NCBI GenBank assembly: GCA_965603825.1
Contig: CBFDEM010000037.1
Span: 496,001-560,000, forward strand
Length of the DNA: 64,000 nucleotides
Source of the DNA: Blepharisma stoltei ATCC 30299
Taxonomy: Eukaryota > Protista > Ciliophora
Direction: 5' to 3'
The notes under the pieces are model-generated. The model was not told the DNA's origin and ran no database searches. It saw nothing but the letters and a program-made list of their open reading frames with translations. The position numbers and the translations under genes were made by a program. Of the stretch, positions 1,991 to 44,923 are shown piece after piece (the first letter of the stretch is position 1; every line of letters starts with the position of its first letter).

Positions 1991-2551
1991 ATGGATCCTG
2001 GCCGTGAAGCTACTGGAAACAATTGTCTATACTGTTTATTTCTTACCTCAGCCGTCTCTTTACTGATAGTTGGGCTCGGAAATATTGCTGGAGGTGTCGC
2101 AGTCTGGAATAAAGCTGAAAGCTTCAATTGGTACAATGGAGCTTATATCATCCTAGGCGGTGTTTTGACATTACTTGTAATTCTATCAGGAACAACTCGA
2201 AAATCAATGGCTTGAATCTCGATTTATTTGTTTTTGCTTTTAGCCTGCCTATGTGCAGAAATTGGATTTACTTTGGGAATTATTTTTTATTCAGATTATG
2301 AATCAATATTAGGAGAAGAGTATGCAAACGCTATCAGATATTCAATGCTAGCTGGATGTGTCATTGTTTTAGTATGCTTTTTAATCGGATGCTGGTATAG
2401 AGGCAGCTTGAGAAATGCAGTGTTTTATAAAGAAAATGAGCACCTATTGAATCCAAGAGATGTAAAATTTGAGACACCACGAACAGATGCGAAAAGAGAA
2501 GAAATGGCAAATAAATATGACAAATTAAAAGAAAAATGGGAAAAAGCATAA
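1991..2551 (+). CDS. Four-TM, tetraspanin-like membrane protein (186 aa)
   Basis: ORFs 1991..2215 and 2228..2551 are in frame through TGA 2213; four hydrophobic segments and a charged C-tail. Confidence 0.8.
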
Positions 2552-2563
2552 AACTGTAATTAT

Positions 2564-3499
2564 TCAGATTAACGATTTCATGTATTTTCTCAAATTAACT
2601 CTGATGTTTTCATTTTTTGCTAAATCGATCGCCAACTTATTTCCTTCGCTATATATATTAGGATTCGCGCCATGCTCCACAAGCATTCTTATAGCTTTTT
2701 CATTGCCAGTCCTGCTAGCTAAATGAAGGGCTGTTCTTTTAAACTATATAAAAATTACATGGTCAACAACATCAATTAGTCCAGGTAAATCTAAAAGGAT
2801 TTTCATTATATCAAAATTCCCTCTTAGAACTGCCCAGTGCAGACCTGTCATATTTAATAAATCATAGGAATATGCTAAACTTTTCTCCTTTGCGAGATAT
2901 GTATAAACGAGGGTTTCATCACCTTCTTTGCAAGCTCTAATAAAATTTTTTACGTCTTGGTTATAAGCATGCCTATGAATCTGAGCATCGCTTGATGATT
3001 TGTGGTGGGTGAAGTTGATCGACTTAAAAAACTCGATTTTTTGGCTTAAATGGTATTTCGACGCTTCCGGTAATTTTACTTCTTCGTGAGGTTTTTGATT
3101 GGGTTGGGGTTTTATTTCGTTGATATTTTCCACAATCGAGCTTGCCAGCTGAAATGTATTTCTGGGTATCGCAACAATCCCAACAAACTCACTGGTATAC
3201 TTTCCATCCTTTTTGTTGTAGTTTTTGGCTAGATTTTCGTTTATTATGTATTCGGCTTGGTAATCTTCTTCCGGGATTTCTTTATACGAAAACCCTTTGG
3301 CTTTTGACTTATTCATTTCCTGAGTTTTATATATGTTGAAACCTTCAGACTTGGAATGTCCTCTTTTTTTCCTCTCTTTACGAGCTGAAAGAGAAGGAAG
3401 CACAGATGATGTCCTTGAGATTTTCGACAATTTTAGATCTCTTATTGATCTGGAAGTAGGTAGCAGAACTTCTAAGATGTCATGCTTTAATCGGCTCAT
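2564..3499 (-). CDS. Ankyrin-repeat protein; one 15-nt intron; ends at TGA 2564-2566 or, if read through, TAA 2525-2527
   Basis: TGLHWA repeat. Splicing out 2744-2758 restores VDH|FKRTALHLASRTGNEKAIRMLVEHGANPN. Confidence 0.85.
2744..2758 (-). other. 15-nt spliceosomal intron GTAATTTTTATATAG
   Basis: GT..AG, contains the in-frame TAG that ends the ORF-track call; removal restores an ankyrin repeat. Confidence 0.92.
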
Positions 3500-26738: not shown

Positions 26739-27059
26739 TTATTCTTGCAAAAACCTATATTTATAAATCATTTCATTCCATCTATCTTGCATCTCATAAC
26801 TTACACTTGGACTCCTATATGTAACCCCTCTGAACTCATCAGCCTGCATTTCTTTATTAAATTTCACTATCTCATACCCCAAGCTTCTCAATTGTCACGG
26901 ATCCCTTTTTTCATCCCTCACCTCCTGACAATAGATTTCCCATGCTTTCATATACCTATTCACCCTTGTCTCATCTTCCACCATAAATATGCATTTCATC
27001 GTATCTTTTAATATCCCAGCCACAGCCTTCCTTTCCTGTAAAAAATTAAGCCTATTCAT
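26739..27059 (-). CDS. Hypothetical 106-aa helical protein (weak LYR-motif-like pattern), absent from ORF track
   Basis: MNRLNFLQERKAVAGILKDTMKCIF..RDPWQLRSLG..YRFLQE*, one TGA. The plus-strand ORF 26745..27011 is its antisense shadow. Confidence 0.75.
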
Positions 27060-27068
27060 TGCTTATAA

Positions 27069-28568
27069 ATGTCAACTCCAAGCGCTTATAAGGCTGGGGC
27101 CAACACCCAAGCCCGTGGCAAAGTCGGAAAAGTTGGAAAAGCCGCCCCTGCCCCAGCTCCCCGTGGCAAAGTTGCGACTGATACCAAGCACACCCCTAAG
27201 GACGCCAAAGAAATGTTTTTGAAAAGGGTTCAGCTGTGCAGTATCACTTATGATTATTCAGACGACAATAAAGACGTTAAAGCTAAATCTGAGAGAAATG
27301 CAGCTTTACAAGATTTAAGGGAGTTTTTAAATGACTCGAAAAATGTGGCACAGTATGTAATTCCGCATCTGGATCTTGTCATTGATATGATCAAGAAAAA
27401 TATCTTCAGACCTTTGCCGATGGATAAGAAAGGAGGAGATAAATTGGGACCAGGAGAAGCGGGAGCTGAAGGAGGTGATGAAGATATGGTCATTGACCCA
27501 GCGTGGCCGCATTTACAAGGGGTTTATGAGTTCTTTTTTGAGCTTATTATATGTGAAGCAACTGATGTGAAAAGTTTGAAGGTTTTTATAACTCCAAGCT
27601 TTATACAGGACTTTTTGCAGCTTTTTGATAGTGAGGAGCCTCGAGAAAGAGACTATTTAAAAAATATTTTACATAGGCTATATGCAAAATTAGTTCCAAG
27701 AAGAAAAATGATAAGAAAAGCAATAAACGACTCCTTCCTTACAATGATTCACGAAACACAAAGATTCAACGGTGCCAGCGAGCTCTTAGACATTCTCGCC
27801 TCAATTATCAGTGGTTTTGCAGTCCCCTTACGAGAAGAGCACGTTGTCTTTTTCAAAGTGATCATGATTCCTCTCCACAAAGTCCAAACTGCCCACATAT
27901 TCCACGAGCAGCTCCTCCGTTGCTCCATGCTTTTCCTCAGCAAAGACCACGCCTTAGCAATACCTCTTGTGGAAGGTCTTCTCCGATACTGGCCATTTGG
28001 AAACTCAGTTAAAGAAACTTTATATTTAACAGAGCTCCAAGAAGTCCTCGAAGTCTGCGAACTGGCGAAACTTGAACCTTTAATCCCAAAACTCTTTAAA
28101 AGGCTTGTTAGATGTATTTCTGGACCTCAACTTCAGGTAGCTGACCGTGCTATGTGTTTCTTTGAAAATGACTACTTTTTAGGGATTTTGCGTACCTTTA
28201 AACAAGTCACTTTTCCAATGGTCGTCCCTGTTATTGTAGAACTAGCCGAAACACATTGGCATAAAATACTTCAAGAATCGTTAAATGCACTTAAGGTGAT
28301 TTTGAAAGAAATTGACCCTGTGGCTTTTGATAGAGCTCTACAAACCGGATCAAGAGATCTGGCAAGGGCAAATTCATTGGGCACTATGCATAACTTGCCG
28401 GCAAGGGCTACGACTGAAGCGAAGTGGGATGCACTTGCTGCGAAAGCAAAAGCGATTGATCCGAGATTTAAAGCTCCTTGTGTGCCTTATGTAGATTCTC
28501 ATGTAGTAGGGCTGAATAATATGAATGGAATTATGCTGACGAGCCAAAATTTAATTCCGCCTACTTAA
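27069..28568 (+). CDS. PPP2R5: PP2A regulatory subunit B' (B56)
   Basis: PAWPHLQ.VYE, LFDSEEPRERDYLK, FNGASELL, GLLRYWP, QVADRA. Confidence 0.96.
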   Translation: MSTPSAYKAGANTQARGKVGKVGKAAPAPAPRGKVATDTKHTPKDAKEMFLKRVQLCSITYDYSDDNKDVKAKSERNAALQDLREFLNDSKNVAQYVIPHLDLVIDMIKKNIFRPLPMDKKGGDKLGPGEAGAEGGDEDMVIDPAWPHLQGVYEFFFELIICEATDVKSLKVFITPSFIQDFLQLFDSEEPRERDYLKNILHRLYAKLVPRRKMIRKAINDSFLTMIHETQRFNGASELLDILASIISGFAVPLREEHVVFFKVIMIPLHKVQTAHIFHEQLLRCSMLFLSKDHALAIPLVEGLLRYWPFGNSVKETLYLTELQEVLEVCELAKLEPLIPKLFKRLVRCISGPQLQVADRAMCFFENDYFLGILRTFKQVTFPMVVPVIVELAETHWHKILQESLNALKVILKEIDPVAFDRALQTGSRDLARANSLGTMHNLPARATTEAKWDALAAKAKAIDPRFKAPCVPYVDSHVVGLNNMNGIMLTSQNLIPPT

Positions 28569-28820
28569 ATAAATAATTAGAGATTCAGCATTAATTAAAC
28601 AATCGGGCGTAGAGATATTTATTGATTGACCATAGTTCTTATTTTTTTTTTTAATAAATACGATTTAATAAGATTCCCAAAAGATATTTTACCTTGCAAT
28701 TGATATGGGAGACATATATATCAATTCGAATAAAAAATAGAAAAAAATTGCTATATAAGATTTAATCAAAAAGTTATTTTATATAAGTATTCGATTTATT
28801 TTTCAATTTGTTTCATTCTT

Positions 28821-29140
28821 TTATTCTTGCAAAAACCTATATTTATAAATCATTTCATTCCATCTATCTTGCATCTCATAACTTACACTTGGACTTCTAT
28901 ATGCAACCCCTCTAAACTCATCAGCCTGCATTTCTTTATTAAATTTCACTATCTCATACCCCAAGCTTCTCAATTGTCACGGATCCCTTTTTCATCCCTC
29001 ACCTCTTGACAATAGATTTCCCATGCTTTCATATGCCTATTCACCCTTGTCTCATTTTCCACTATAAATATGCATTTCATCGTATCTTTTAATATCCCAG
29101 CCGCAGCCTTCTTTTCCTGTAAAAAATTAAGCCTATTCAT
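28821..29140 (-). pseudogene. Frameshifted duplicate of the 106-aa gene
   Basis: The plus-strand T6 run is T5 at about 28988-28992, leading to an early TAG. A homopolymer sequencing error is possible. Confidence 0.65.
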
Positions 29141-29149
29141 TGCTTATAG

Positions 29150-30649
29150 ATGTCAACTCCAAGCGTTTATAAGGCTGGGGCCAACACCCAAGCCCGTGGT
29201 ATAGTCGGAAAAATTGGAAAAGCCGCCCCTGCCCCAGCTCCCCGTGGCAAAGTTGAGACTGATGCCAAGCACACCCCTAAGGACGCCAAAGAAATGTTTT
29301 TGAAAAGGGTTCAGCTGTGCAGTGTCACTTATGATTATTCAGACGACGATAAAGACGTTAAAGCTAAATCTGAGAGAAATGCAGCTTTACAAAATTTAAG
29401 GGAGTTTTTAAATGACTCGAAAAATGTGGCACAGTATGTAATTCCGCATCTGGATCTTGTCATTGATATGATCAAGAAAAATATCTTCAGGCCTCTACCG
29501 ATGGATAAGAAAGGAGGAGATAAATTGGGACCGGGAGAAGCGCAAGCTGAAGGAGGAGATGAAGATATGGTCATTGACCCAGCGTGGCCACATTTGCAAG
29601 GGGTTTATGAGTTCGTTTTTGAGCTTATTATATGTGAAGCAACTGATGTGAAAAGTTTGAAGGTTTTTATAACTCCAAGCTTTATTCAGGACTTTTTGCA
29701 GCTTTTTGATAGTGAGGAGCCTCGAGAAAGAGACTATTTAAAAAATATTTTACAATTGCTATATGCAAAATTTGTTTCAAGAAGAAAAATGATAAGAAAA
29801 GCAATAAACGACTCCTTCCTTACAATGATTCACGAAACACAAAGATTCAACGGTGCCAGCGAGCTCTAAGATATTCTCGCATCAATTATCAGTAATTTTG
29901 CTGTCCCCTTACGAGAAGAGCACGTTGTCTTTTTCAAAGTTATCATGATTCCTCTCCACAAAGTCCAAACTACTCACATATTCCACGAGCAGCTTCTCCG
30001 TTGCTCCATGCTTTTCCTCAGCAAAAACCACGCCTTAGCAATACCTCTTATGGAAGGTCTTCTCCGATACTGGCCATTTGGAAACTCAGTTAAAGAAACT
30101 TTATATTTAACAGAGCTCCAAGAAGTCCTCGAAGTCTGCGAACTGGCGAAACTTGAACCTTTAATCCCAAAACTCTTTAAAAGGCTTGCTAGATGTATTT
30201 CTGGACCTCAACTTCAGGTAGCTGACCGTGCTATGTGTTTCTTTGAAAATGACTACTTTTTAGGGATTTTGCGTACCTTTAAACAAGTCACTTTTCCAAT
30301 GGTCGTCCCTGTTATTGTAGAACTAGCCGAAACACATTGGCATAAAATACTTCAAGAATCGTTAAATGCACTTAAGGTGATTTTGAAAGAAATTGACCCT
30401 GTGGCTTTTGATAGAGCTCTACAAACCGGATCAAGAGATCTGGCAAGGGCAAATTCGTTGGGCACTATGCATAACTTGCCGGCAAGGGCTACGACTGAAG
30501 CGAAGTGGGATGCACTTGCTGCGAAAGCAAAAGCGATTGATCCGAGATTTAAAGCTCCTTGTGTGCCTTATGTAGATTCTCATGTAGTAGGGCTGAATAA
30601 TATGAATGGAATTATGCTGACGAGCCAAAATTTAATTCCGCCTACTTAA
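29150..30649 (+). pseudogene. PP2A B' duplicate with premature stop
   Basis: TTA(Leu) changed to TAA at 29867-29869, plus many missense changes at conserved sites (HRLYAKLVP to QLLYAKFVS; ISG to ISN). Confidence 0.9.
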
Positions 30650-34773: not shown

Positions 34774-35377
34774 ATGATAAGATCATTGCTTCACAAACAA
34801 TTCCCAAGGTGCTTCTCCAGCTTCAAAAACGTGTCAGAAGAGGAATGAAAAGAACTAGAAAAAAAATCAATAAAATCAATGCAGATCTAAGTGTTATAAA
34901 TAAAAACTTAATTTACCTGTCAGCTCAAACAATTACAACGAGTCATCTAGATGAATTTCAAAATGATATAGCATATAAAGTTCTCTTGGGGCTTATCTAT
35001 GGGGCATTTGGTTTTGGTTTTTTATATTGGCAAATCTCAGCTCAAGGTGATAGCATTTATTCCAAAATTGAGAAAAAAGATGATAATTTGTATAAAAATA
35101 TTGAGAGAAAATTTGGAAACTTTGATAAAAATATTGAGAGAAAACTTGAAATTTTGGATGGAAAATCTGAACACTCGGATAAAAATATTTATGGAAAATT
35201 TGAAAATTTGGATAAAACTATTGAGAGAAAATTTGAAAACTTGAATAAAAATATTGAGAGAAAATTTGATACGAGTGATTGAAACTTTAAATCTTTAGTG
35301 AAAAAATTGATTGAAAATTTAAATCATTAGAGTCAAAAATTGATCCAAGAATTGAAGATTTAAAATTAAAGCATTAA
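34774..35377 (+). pseudogene. Frameshifted gene for a mitochondrial-type single-TM protein with 11-aa repeats
   Basis: ATG 34774 MIRSLLHKQFPRCFSS. Shift at the A8 run about 34859-34866 into ORF 34809..35282. Second shift about 35297 into EKIDWKFKSLESKIDPRIEDLKLKH*. Confidence 0.6.
35062..35270 (+). repeat. 33-nt (11-aa) degenerate tandem repeat, KNIERKFENLD
   Basis: Recurrent ATAAAAATATTGAGAGAAAATTTG. Confidence 0.8.
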
Positions 35378-40910: not shown

Positions 40911-42125
40911 ATGGAAAACAGGCTTGCTATTGATAAGCTCGGAATCAATATTCTTGATCAAATTACAGACTTTTTGGCACCTTTAGAGATTGTTAGCATT
41001 TTTGGTATAAACCGATCTTTCCACAAACTTTGAAATTCAAAAATACAACAAAAAATATTCCAAGCATTCCCAGACTTTACCTTGCAAATGGATCCTAGAG
41101 AAAAATGGCTCCATCTTCAAATAAGAGTGACGTGTCAAAATAAAAATTACCCAAAAATTACAAAAATGACATCAGATAATAAAATATACGTCCTCGATAT
41201 ATCTTTTACGCCAGAGCCTGAGATTAAATTGTTCACAGATGGTCAAATAAATTTATGGAAGCCTGAGAGTCCTAATAAAAAAAATATAAAATGTTCAAAT
41301 ATCTCAGAGTTAGAATATCCAATTCAAGCCTGTGGTTATGAAGATAACCATCTTGCATTACTGCTAGAAAATGGCAAGGTCAAACACATTTACAATAATG
41401 TAGAAGTAAATGATTTTCAAGTAAGAGGTATAAATTACGAAAAAATAACCCAAATGTTTTTCTTGCTGAAATGTTCGAGACTTGTCATGCAGTGCTCGAA
41501 AAAAATTGTTTTTATGGATTATAATGGTAATATTTCCTTAAATATGAAACTTGGATTAATGGAAAAATATAAGGTAGTACCTTGGGCAAATGATGCATTT
41601 ATTACAGTTATTAATGAAAATTTATTATATATTGATGATACTTGGGGAAGAAAATTGTTGTGCAATTATTCTGGCCCAGCTCTTAAGAGAACGCCTGATT
41701 TCTGAATTGATGAAGAATCAAAAAAATATGTATTTCAGACTGGAAAGAAAAATAGTGGTTGGGCTAAAAAAGTGAATGCAAATTGAATAGATTTTGTTGA
41801 AAAAGGTACTAAAATGTTTAGGACTAAAGATCACCATTATATTTTAATTGATAGATACACACTTATAGATGAGTGTTGCAGCCATCAATATAAGATTACA
41901 CAAGATCTTGAAAACGTCTTACAGAATGGTGTTTACATTTTAACCCACTGCATAAGTCCACAAAATAATCAATTAATTCAGCTATTTATAGAAGGAGAAA
42001 CAAATCATATAGCTCTCAAGTGGCTGCCATACAATATCAATATTCTAAGCTTTGCTTTCCCTTATATAGTTTACTCAGCTGCTTTAGAAGAAGGAGATTT
42101 TGAGATAGGCATTCTAAAGTTTTAA
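40911..42125 (+). CDS. F-box-like protein, paralog A (404 aa)
   Basis: IDKLGINILDQITDFLAPLEIVSIFGINRSFHKLW F-box-like N-terminus; beta-rich body; TGA at 41031, 41703 and 41784. Confidence 0.75.
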
Positions 42126-42226
42126 TTTATTATTTCTTTAAACTTATAATCAGCATATAATTACTTGCAAATAATTTTAATTAATGAGTTTTATTGATAC
42201 CAATTTGTTCTGTTTATATATAAATA

Positions 42227-43439
42227 ATGGAAAGAAAGCTATCAATTGAAAAATTCGGGATAAATATCATTGATGAAATAACAAACTTTTTATTACCTCA
42301 AGAAATTGTATGTCTTTTTGGTGTAAATCAGTATTTTCATAAACTCTGAAGCTCAAGAATTTCTAAAAAAATATTTAAAGCTCTTCCGAATTTTACTAAA
42401 CAAATAGAACTTCAAGAGAGGTGATTGTATCATCAAATGAAAATGATGTGCCTAAATCATAATTATCCAAAAAACATAAAAATAACTTCAAGCCATTCCA
42501 TATATGTTTTAGAATATTTATTCAACCCAAAGCCTGAATTTAAGTTATTTATAGATGGCCAAATAACTATTTGGAGACCTGAAAGTGAAAATCAAAAAAT
42601 CACAACATATTCTGACCTCGCACACATAGAATTTGCTATTCATGCACATGCCTATGAAACTGAACATCTGGCATTAATGCTAACAAATAATAGAATCAAA
42701 CATATTTATAAAAATGAGGAAATCAACGAGTTTGATATTAGTGAATTTGGTTATTTGGCAATATCAAAAATGTTTTATTTGCCAAATGCAAATTTTCTTA
42801 TTTTTCAATGCCTTTCAGGGGATATTATTTATATGTCAAATAATGGAGAAATTATTTCAAATAGAAAATTAGGAGTTATACAAAAATATAAAAATTTGCC
42901 TTGAAAAAATGACTCGTTTGTAGCTATTATTAATAATAAATTTTTTCTTATTGAGCCGCACTCGATAAAATTATTATGCCAGTACTCAAAATCTGTTCTT
43001 GAAAAGCTTCCTGAATTCTGACTAGCAAAAGAAACAGAAAAACTTATAATCCACACTGGTAAGAAAAATAGTGGCTGAACGAGTAATGCATCACTGAATT
43101 GAATTTTTACCTATAGGTAAAAAAGTGTTTAAAATACAAAACCATCTGCTTTTTATAAAAGATCAAAGCCGCAATCTAACAGATTCATGTTGTGGATATA
43201 AATATAGAATTTTTCATAAAATCAAAAATATCTTTATTAATGGCAACTATATTTTAGTTCATTATATTAATCGATCTTATCATTGAATTCAACTATTTAT
43301 TGTTGGAGAAAAAGATGCAATTATTAATAAGCGAATTCCTATTTCCATTAAAGTAGTAAATTTTGCTTATCCTTATATTGCTTACTTAACTATTGGCTCT
43401 ACGGATGGTCTTGCTGAAGTTGGTCTTTTTAAGTTTTAA
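42227..43439 (+). pseudogene. F-box-like paralog B, frameshifted
   Basis: An apparent 5-nt deletion near 43082 relative to A and C gives a premature TAA at 43118; the homologous tail continues in another frame to TAA 43437. Confidence 0.75.
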
Positions 43440-43729
43440 TCAGAAATTTTAAAAGAAATTTATTTATCGAAATAATAATGCTCTTTATATGTATTATGAA
43501 TTTTGTAAATATTTCATTTTATAAGTGTTATCTATTAAAATTATATATTTTTAATAGTACGTCAAATGCATCAAAGTACTTAATTTGCCTTTCTTTTCAT
43601 AAGTTATAAAAGCTTCCCTGAAAGGATAAGTCTGGTAGATCTATTTAGATTATATAAAATTTAATTTGTTGAGATTTAATAAACTATTAAATTATGGTGC
43701 CATAATCTCAAATTATAAATATAAATAGA

Positions 43730-44923
43730 ATGGTAAAGCCGACATTTAAAGATTTTGGAATAAATATTATTGATGAAATAACAAACTTTTTATCAACTCA
43801 AGAAATTGTAAGTCTTTTTGGCGTAAACCAGTATACACATAAACTCTGAAACTCAAGAATTTCCACAAAAGTATTTGAAACTCGCCCGAATTTTACGATA
43901 GAAATAGAGCCTCGAGAAAGGTGATTATATCATCAAATGAAAATGATGTGTAAAAATAAAAATTATCCAATCAGCGTAAAAATAACTTCAAGCCATTCCA
44001 TATATGTTTTAGAATATTTATTCAACCCAAAGCCTGATTTAAAGTTATTTATAGATGACCAAATAACTATTTGGAGACCTGAAAGTGAAAATCAAATAGT
44101 TGCAACACTTTCTAATTTTGCAGACATGGAATTTGCTATTCATGCATATGCCTATGAAGCTGAACATCTGGCATTAATGCTAACAAATAATAGAGTCAAG
44201 CATATGCATAAAAATGAGGAAATCAACGAGTTTGAAATTAGTGAATTTGGCTATTTGGCAATATCAAAAATGTTTTATTTGCCAAATGCAAATTTTCTTA
44301 TTTTTCAATGCCTTTCAGGGGATATTATTTATATGTCAAATAATGGAGAAATTATTTCAAATAGAAAATTAGGAGTTATACAAAAATATAAAAATTTACC
44401 TTGAAAAAAAGATTCCTTCGTGGCAATCATTAATAATGAATTTTTATATATTGGGCCTCACTCTGCAAAGTTATTGTGCACTCCCAATGAATCTGCGATT
44501 ACTAATATTCCTGATTTCTGAATTGACAAAGAAACAGAAAAACTTATAATTCATATAGGAGAGAAAAATTGTGGCTGAATGAGAAAAGTCAAGCCTTGCG
44601 TAATTGATTTCATAGAAAAAGGCATAAAAATGTTTAAAACCCAAAACCACTCTTATATTTTAAATAAATATAATATACTCACAGATTTGTGCTGCGACCA
44701 TCATTATCAACTTACACCAGGAGTTGAAAATATTTTTGCTGATGGCATCTACGTCTTAGCTACTTATATTAATTTTTTTCAACTATTTAGAATTGGAGAA
44801 AAAAACGACATAGCCACCAAACTGTTACCACCAAGCCTCAAAGTCCTTAATTTTGCTTATCCTTATATTTTATACTCAAATACGCAAAGCGGTGAAGCTG
44901 AAATAGGTATTTTCAAGTTTTAA
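43730..44923 (+). CDS. F-box-like protein, paralog C (397 aa)
   Basis: Continuous frame with TGA=Trp; ends EIGIFKF, like paralogs A and B. Confidence 0.78.

Follow-up and report, generated by a model that had tools for sequence, protein, structure and literature searches.

An in-frame UGA near the end of an ankyrin-repeat gene of Blepharisma stoltei: tryptophan codon or stop?

Structure of the Locus

The window, that is, the whole 64,000-nucleotide stretch of the B. stoltei ATCC 30299 genome that was analyzed, contains near its start two convergent genes whose 3' ends lie very close to each other. Their features are as follows.

2759–3499, reverse strand: exon 1 (247 codons) of an ankyrin-repeat gene, whose product is a public B. 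stoltei protein of 319 aa
2744–2758, reverse strand: canonical 15-nt intron, branch A at position 10, spliced out of the annotated protein
2567–2743, reverse strand: the 59 codons of exon 2 ahead of the TGA, with the last ankyrin repeat (Pfam Ank, E = 1.6e-8)
2564–2566, reverse strand: in-frame TGA, decoded as Trp by the published code and the annotation, candidate stop in the original prediction
2528–2563, reverse strand: 12 codons past the TGA, antisense of the 3'UTR and last codons of the neighbor
2525–2527, reverse strand: first genomic in-frame TAA, annotated stop of the ankyrin gene
1991–2551, forward strand: convergent gene for a 186-aa membrane-protein-like product, with one internal UGA-Trp and a paralog on contig C55
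2555–2565, forward strand: 11-nt 3'UTR element of this neighbor, TGTAATTATTC, identical in the C55 paralog

The Pfam Ank repeats exceed the curated cut-off. In the macronuclear genome of B. stoltei, introns are mostly 15–16 nt long (10.1101/2021.12.14.471607), and the 15-nt intron at 2758–2744 occupies the same position in six paralogs of the ankyrin gene; the annotation called it from RNA-seq under a threshold of 10 or more spliced reads. In the published code of the species, UGA encodes Trp and UAA and UAG are stops (NCBI table 4; 10.1101/2021.12.14.471607; 10.1101/2023.10.09.561518). In the public annotation of the 319-aa protein, the TGA at 2566–2564 is a Trp codon and the TAA at 2527–2525 is the stop, but because the annotation forces table 4, this read-through is not independent evidence on termination.

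Gene models came from a purpose-built gene finder in which very short introns and overlaps between convergent genes are permitted. Its training set comprised the window, nine short loci, and 200 kb of contig C1, and it reproduces the annotated ankyrin gene. The sample statistics given below rest on less than 1% of the genome and on our own gene models, in which single ends may be wrong. Searches with these models used single exons or the segments lying between TGAs as queries.

The original prediction had proposed that this TGA may act as a stop, and the geometry on which it was based holds. The ankyrin frame runs to LRKYMKSLI and then to the TGA at 2566–2564, which is separated by 12 nt (2552–2563) from the TAA of the neighbor (2549–2551). 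Reading the TGA as Trp adds the 13-aa tail WIITVLCFFPFFF up to the TAA at 2527–2525 and makes the two coding sequences overlap by 27 nt. This overlap had been described as the only one seen, and it was also the only one among the 36 convergent pairs of genes with at least 100 codons in our sample of ~300 kb, in which the next-tightest gaps were 4, 8, 11, 11, and 20 nt. At the transcript level, poly(A) transcripts of convergent genes frequently overlap in the B. stoltei genome.

The read-through tail has a Kyte–Doolittle hydropathy of 2.33, above all 172 other C-termini (maximum, 1.85) and inside the range of peptides obtained by reading through UTRs (90th percentile, 1.98; maximum, 2.64). Peptides of the latter kind are frequently hydrophobic in B. 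stoltei, and the character of the tail therefore calls for no special explanation. The coding-versus-UTR score of the 36 nt 3' of the TGA was 0.1, between the two classes.

The Convergent Neighbor and the Origin of the Short Gap

The neighbor and its C55 paralog share 86% amino acid identity with the stop aligned, and their codon differences comprise 64 synonymous and 26 nonsynonymous changes; on this comparison, the 186-aa neighbor is a real gene. The element TGTAATTATTC also stands directly after the TAA of the C55 paralog, where there is no ankyrin gene behind it. It is identical at 11 of 11 positions in the two paralogs, compared with 54% at fourfold sites, and it covers two of the three bases of the antisense of the TGA. 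GTAAT is enriched right behind stops in the sample (18 vs. 3). Because the paralog shares the element without an ankyrin gene, the greater part of the gap, together with two of the bases antisense to the TGA, belongs to the 3'UTR of the neighbor, and the tight 12-nt gap is explained by the DNA there being this conserved 3'UTR. A candidate decayed ankyrin relic behind the C55 paralog was rejected as not significant (54 of 500 shuffles reached its score).

The neighbor (1991–2551, forward strand) is absent among the called genes of the public record, probably because of the CDS overlap, which appears to have cost the public annotation one real gene.

UGA Codons Close to Stops in Other Genes

It had also been stated that no other internal TGA in an intact gene lies within about 60 nt of its stop. 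This does not stand: in 12 of the 182 sample genes, the stop is preceded by a TGA at a distance of 20 codons or less, in three of them within 3 codons, and five TGAs lie within 7 codons. Inside the window, the gene model at 34845–35330 has an internal TGA 48 nt from its stop, and homologous UGA-Trp codons precede the TAA of the gene at 42227–43120 by 18 and 42 nt. The latter gene, truncated at 297 aa, is the middle one of three tandem paralogs with an F-box-like N-terminus (40911–44923, forward strand).

Three genes end in UAA or UAG, as the published Blepharisma code prescribes, with a sense UGA near the end: FolD, a kinase, and a PLAC8 gene. In FolD, a TGA occurs 21 nt before the TAA. It aligns with a TGG followed by a tail of equal length, six residues, in Stentor coeruleus, which uses the standard code, and with W in Moneuplotes; in a second UGA = Trp heterotrich (run SRR24908292, syntenic contig L032), the corresponding TGA is followed by 11 residues. 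In the kinase, the TGA lies 33 nt before the TAA, right behind Pkinase profile position 261 of 263, and the aligned W is also TGA in the second heterotrich. We take this W to be that of the HPW motif of the family. In the PLAC8 gene, the TGA is 57 nt before the stop and within the domain (profile position 88 of 101). These alignments show that UGA serves as a Trp codon as near a stop as in the ankyrin gene, where the distance is 39 nt. The orthologous genes of the second heterotrich end in UAR. At aligned Trp sites, the two species showed 14 TGG–TGG, 14 TGA–TGA, and 21 mixed pairs, an interchange that shows UGA to be Trp inside genes.

Ambiguous codons located 24–66 nt upstream of a stop undergo translation in Condylostoma as well (PMC4967479); the FolD and kinase examples are therefore compatible with a rule based on the distance to the poly(A) tail.

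The L032 heterotrich (UGA = Trp, syntenic with B. stoltei C1, 33–75% protein identity) is a useful comparison genome, and its Mpv17-like gene has a TGA 21 nt before the TAA. TGAs 2–3 codons before UAR were also noted in L019:3841-5028 (reverse), L015:7328-7782 (forward), and L031:2683-3543 (forward); these could be Trp codons, fossil stops, or functional stops.

Ends of the Ankyrin Paralogs

The two nearest paralogs (L004 and L005) are 43% identical to the ankyrin gene in exon 2, and when left unspliced, both show an apparent TAG one codon beyond the aligned TGA. This first seemed to support a family-wide end at the TGA position, but both early TAGs are the ends of canonical 15-nt introns. These second introns have log-odds scores, calculated from sequence only, of 10.9 and 10.6 against a sample median of 9.9, and downstream of each lies a conserved exon of 10 codons, which shows several synonymous differences and closes with a TAA in aligned position. 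After splicing, L004 and L005 end 11 residues past a shared YM and five further paralogs end ~14 to 40 residues past it; in the gene studied here, the distance would be 4 residues for a stop at the TGA and 17 for read-through. No spliced paralog ends at the TGA, all ending at least 7 residues later. The second introns of L004 and L005 are predicted ones; isoforms that retain them would terminate close to the position of the TGA, which leaves slight support for a stop there. Paralog comparisons in this genome should be read with the warning that tiny 15-nt introns ending in TAG imitate early stops.

Orthologs of the ankyrin protein were also sought. A word search returned only the protein itself, a large search with part of the database record of the protein (P0001:75-306), which spans the intron, gave matches dominated by long multi-ankyrin proteins and no ortholog, and the JGI metagenomes gave no match.

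Depletion of UGA Before Stops and a Second Candidate Locus

The original prediction had called for a test of UGA depletion near CDS ends, and a partial depletion was found: UGA accounted for 12 of the 61 Trp codons within the last 30 codons and 217 of the 605 in gene bodies (20% vs. 36%, p = 0.011). The finding reproduces that of Swart et al. (2023), who observed UGA to be depleted 25–30 codons before stops and found only Trp for UGA in B. stoltei (10.1101/2023.10.09.561518). In the 300-kb sample, TGA was absent from all 1,820 codons lying 21–30 codons before stops (7.2 expected), with 12 TGAs within 1–20 codons; this zero may be chance, or true depletion mixed with mis-set gene ends.

At the ankyrin locus, the gene model kept the read-through when a TGA stop was given a 1% prior, and when the prior was raised to 5%, it ended the gene at the TGA. 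Among genes of at least 100 codons, this DNA-based model preferred a TGA end at the 1% prior in one gene in ~300 kb.

In L031:6047-6694 (reverse strand; G000:C1:396047-396694), a coding-like ORF ends with KNFYYKH and is followed by TGA and AT-rich, UTR-like DNA. Its next in-frame UAR is 78 codons further on, within the next gene of the same strand, and the model favors the TGA end even at a 0.1% prior. No paralog of this ORF was found. It is a stronger candidate than the ankyrin locus for a UGA stop or for a UAA completed by poly(A).

Possible Ends Downstream of the TGA

Two further features of the reverse strand bear on where translation of the ankyrin frame may end.

2551, 2548, 2545, 2542, 2536, 2533, and 2530, reverse strand: U positions at which cleavage and poly(A) addition would complete UAA
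2554–2573, reverse strand: lone GT..AG pair over the TGA, 20 nt, a poor intron candidate that the RNA-seq-based annotation lacks

Of the eight codons located 13–36 nt past the TGA, seven have U as their first base, and this pattern is a by-product of the A-ending codons of the neighbor. Because heterotrich 3'UTRs are 21–26 nt long, cleavage among these codons could complete a UAA. A comparable system is known from nuclear genes of Blastocystis, in which UAA stops are completed by poly(A) (PMC4159000); the likeness lies in a stop that is absent or distant in the DNA and in the U-first codons in the likely cleavage zone. In Blastocystis, about 15% of genes are concerned and a defined GU-rich signal is used, whereas in the ankyrin gene such completion is a possibility and a genomic UAA is present.

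Removal of an internally eliminated sequence (IES) that would alter the codon was considered and rejected: at the same locus in another assembly that carries germline inserts, these lie near 2280, 2825, 2939, and 3285, and none at 2525–2566.

Interpretation

Our preferred reading, to which we assign a probability of about 65%, is that the UGA is read as Trp and that translation ends at the genomic UAA or at a poly(A)-completed UAA. In this scenario, an ordinary ankyrin gene of B. stoltei would have lost its native last codons and stop, and its frame would then have come to extend into the antisense of the neighbor's 3'UTR. The UGA would mostly be decoded as Trp by the tRNA-Trp(CCA) with a 4-bp stem that has been published for the species, a role proposed here for this codon, and translation would end 4–13 codons later, at the UAA at 2527–2525 or at one of the seven U positions. 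The tail would be a non-adaptive antisense shadow, and minor termination by eRF1 at the UGA would be compatible with the Trp reading. Against this reading, it requires either the sole CDS overlap of the 36 pairs or exact placement of the poly(A) site, the tail would be the most hydrophobic C-terminus of 173, the mRNA could end upstream of 2525 given 3'UTRs of 21–26 nt, and UGA is depleted near gene ends.

The original case for UGA as a stop is weaker than stated: UGAs close to gene ends occur frequently, and conserved Trp codons are among them; no spliced paralog ends at the TGA; the gap is the neighbor's 3'UTR; and downstream there are a genomic UAA and seven codons that poly(A) could complete. 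[quoted passage not shown] Such a stop would abolish the unique overlap and the odd tail, and the resulting 12-nt gap would agree with the other tight convergent gaps. It would also accord with the UGA depletion before stops, with the weak recognition of UGA in vitro by B. japonicum eRF1 cited by Swart et al. (2023) (10.1101/2023.10.09.561518), with the unspliced isoforms of the two nearest paralogs, with the switch of the gene model at the 5% prior, and with the stronger candidate at G000:C1:396047. On the other side, the C-terminus would be the shortest in the family, the model retains read-through at the 1% prior, and alternative stops exist downstream. Furthermore, published surveys of poly(A) transcripts take UGA as purely sense in Blepharisma and call its stops unambiguous, and the UGA stops predicted for B. 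japonicum in Swart et al. (2016) were removed, none seeming genuine. Latent competition between eRF1 and tRNA in Blepharisma is an already published possibility, without direct support, and a literature search found no paper on ribosome profiling in Blepharisma.

UGA stops have been demonstrated by ribosome profiling in Condylostoma magnum and by poly(A) transcripts in karyorelicts (PMC4967479; 10.1101/2022.04.12.488043), whereas the TGA of the ankyrin gene is a candidate stop. B. stoltei resembles the ambiguous codes of Condylostoma, Parduczia, and karyorelicts in being a heterotrich relative with short 3'UTRs, a tRNA-Trp with a 4-bp stem, and UGA depletion near gene ends; unlike them, nearly all modeled B. 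stoltei genes end in UAR, and a UGA-Trp occurs 21 nt from a stop. The locus agrees with the papers on the Blepharisma code in that the genome is the same, UGA stands at Trp sites and is depleted before stops, and the 319-aa protein is read through; the CDS overlap and the tail unlike that of the family are not discussed there. UGA termination is unlikely as a lineage-wide rule and possible as a leaky or gene-specific event. It is improbable that B. stoltei stops at UGA within ~40 nt of the poly(A) tail here and in a few genes, which would make it a low-frequency ambiguous intermediate between Stentor and Condylostoma rather than a case of unambiguous reassignment. Were this so, B. stoltei, which can be cultured and whose code is at present listed as unambiguous, would represent a living intermediate with an ambiguous code, and it would offer a system for testing the poly(A)-proximity model.

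Less probable still is that the 3' end of the ankyrin gene is decaying, with mixed transcript ends, many of them stopless and leading to nonstop decay or to a protein degraded through its tail. The family-atypical end, the hydrophobic tail, and the failure to find a close paralog or ortholog would fit such decay, but the frame and the ankyrin repeats are intact and intron 1 was called from spliced reads.

The original prediction had named removal of the TGA by an intron as an outcome that would count against it. The sole GT..AG pair spanning the TGA (20 nt, 2573–2554) makes a poor intron, and its excision is very improbable: it lies within 2 nt of the second-intron position in two paralogs and 3% of B. 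stoltei introns exceed 16 nt, but it has no branch A at −6, its third base is non-consensus, splicing drops with length, it is missing from the RNA-seq-based annotation, and by our own reading of the sequence its removal would open the frame far into the neighbor.

The ankyrin locus is thus a handy place to test for residual UGA stop activity, not evidence of such activity, and the practical value of the analysis lies in a short list of test loci and in the warnings about tiny introns and about the apparent loss of a gene from the annotation. Elsewhere in the window, a 106-aa gene and its 499-aa neighbor are tandemly duplicated at 26739–30649; the second copies are broken, into 63 aa for the former and 239 plus 234 aa for the latter.
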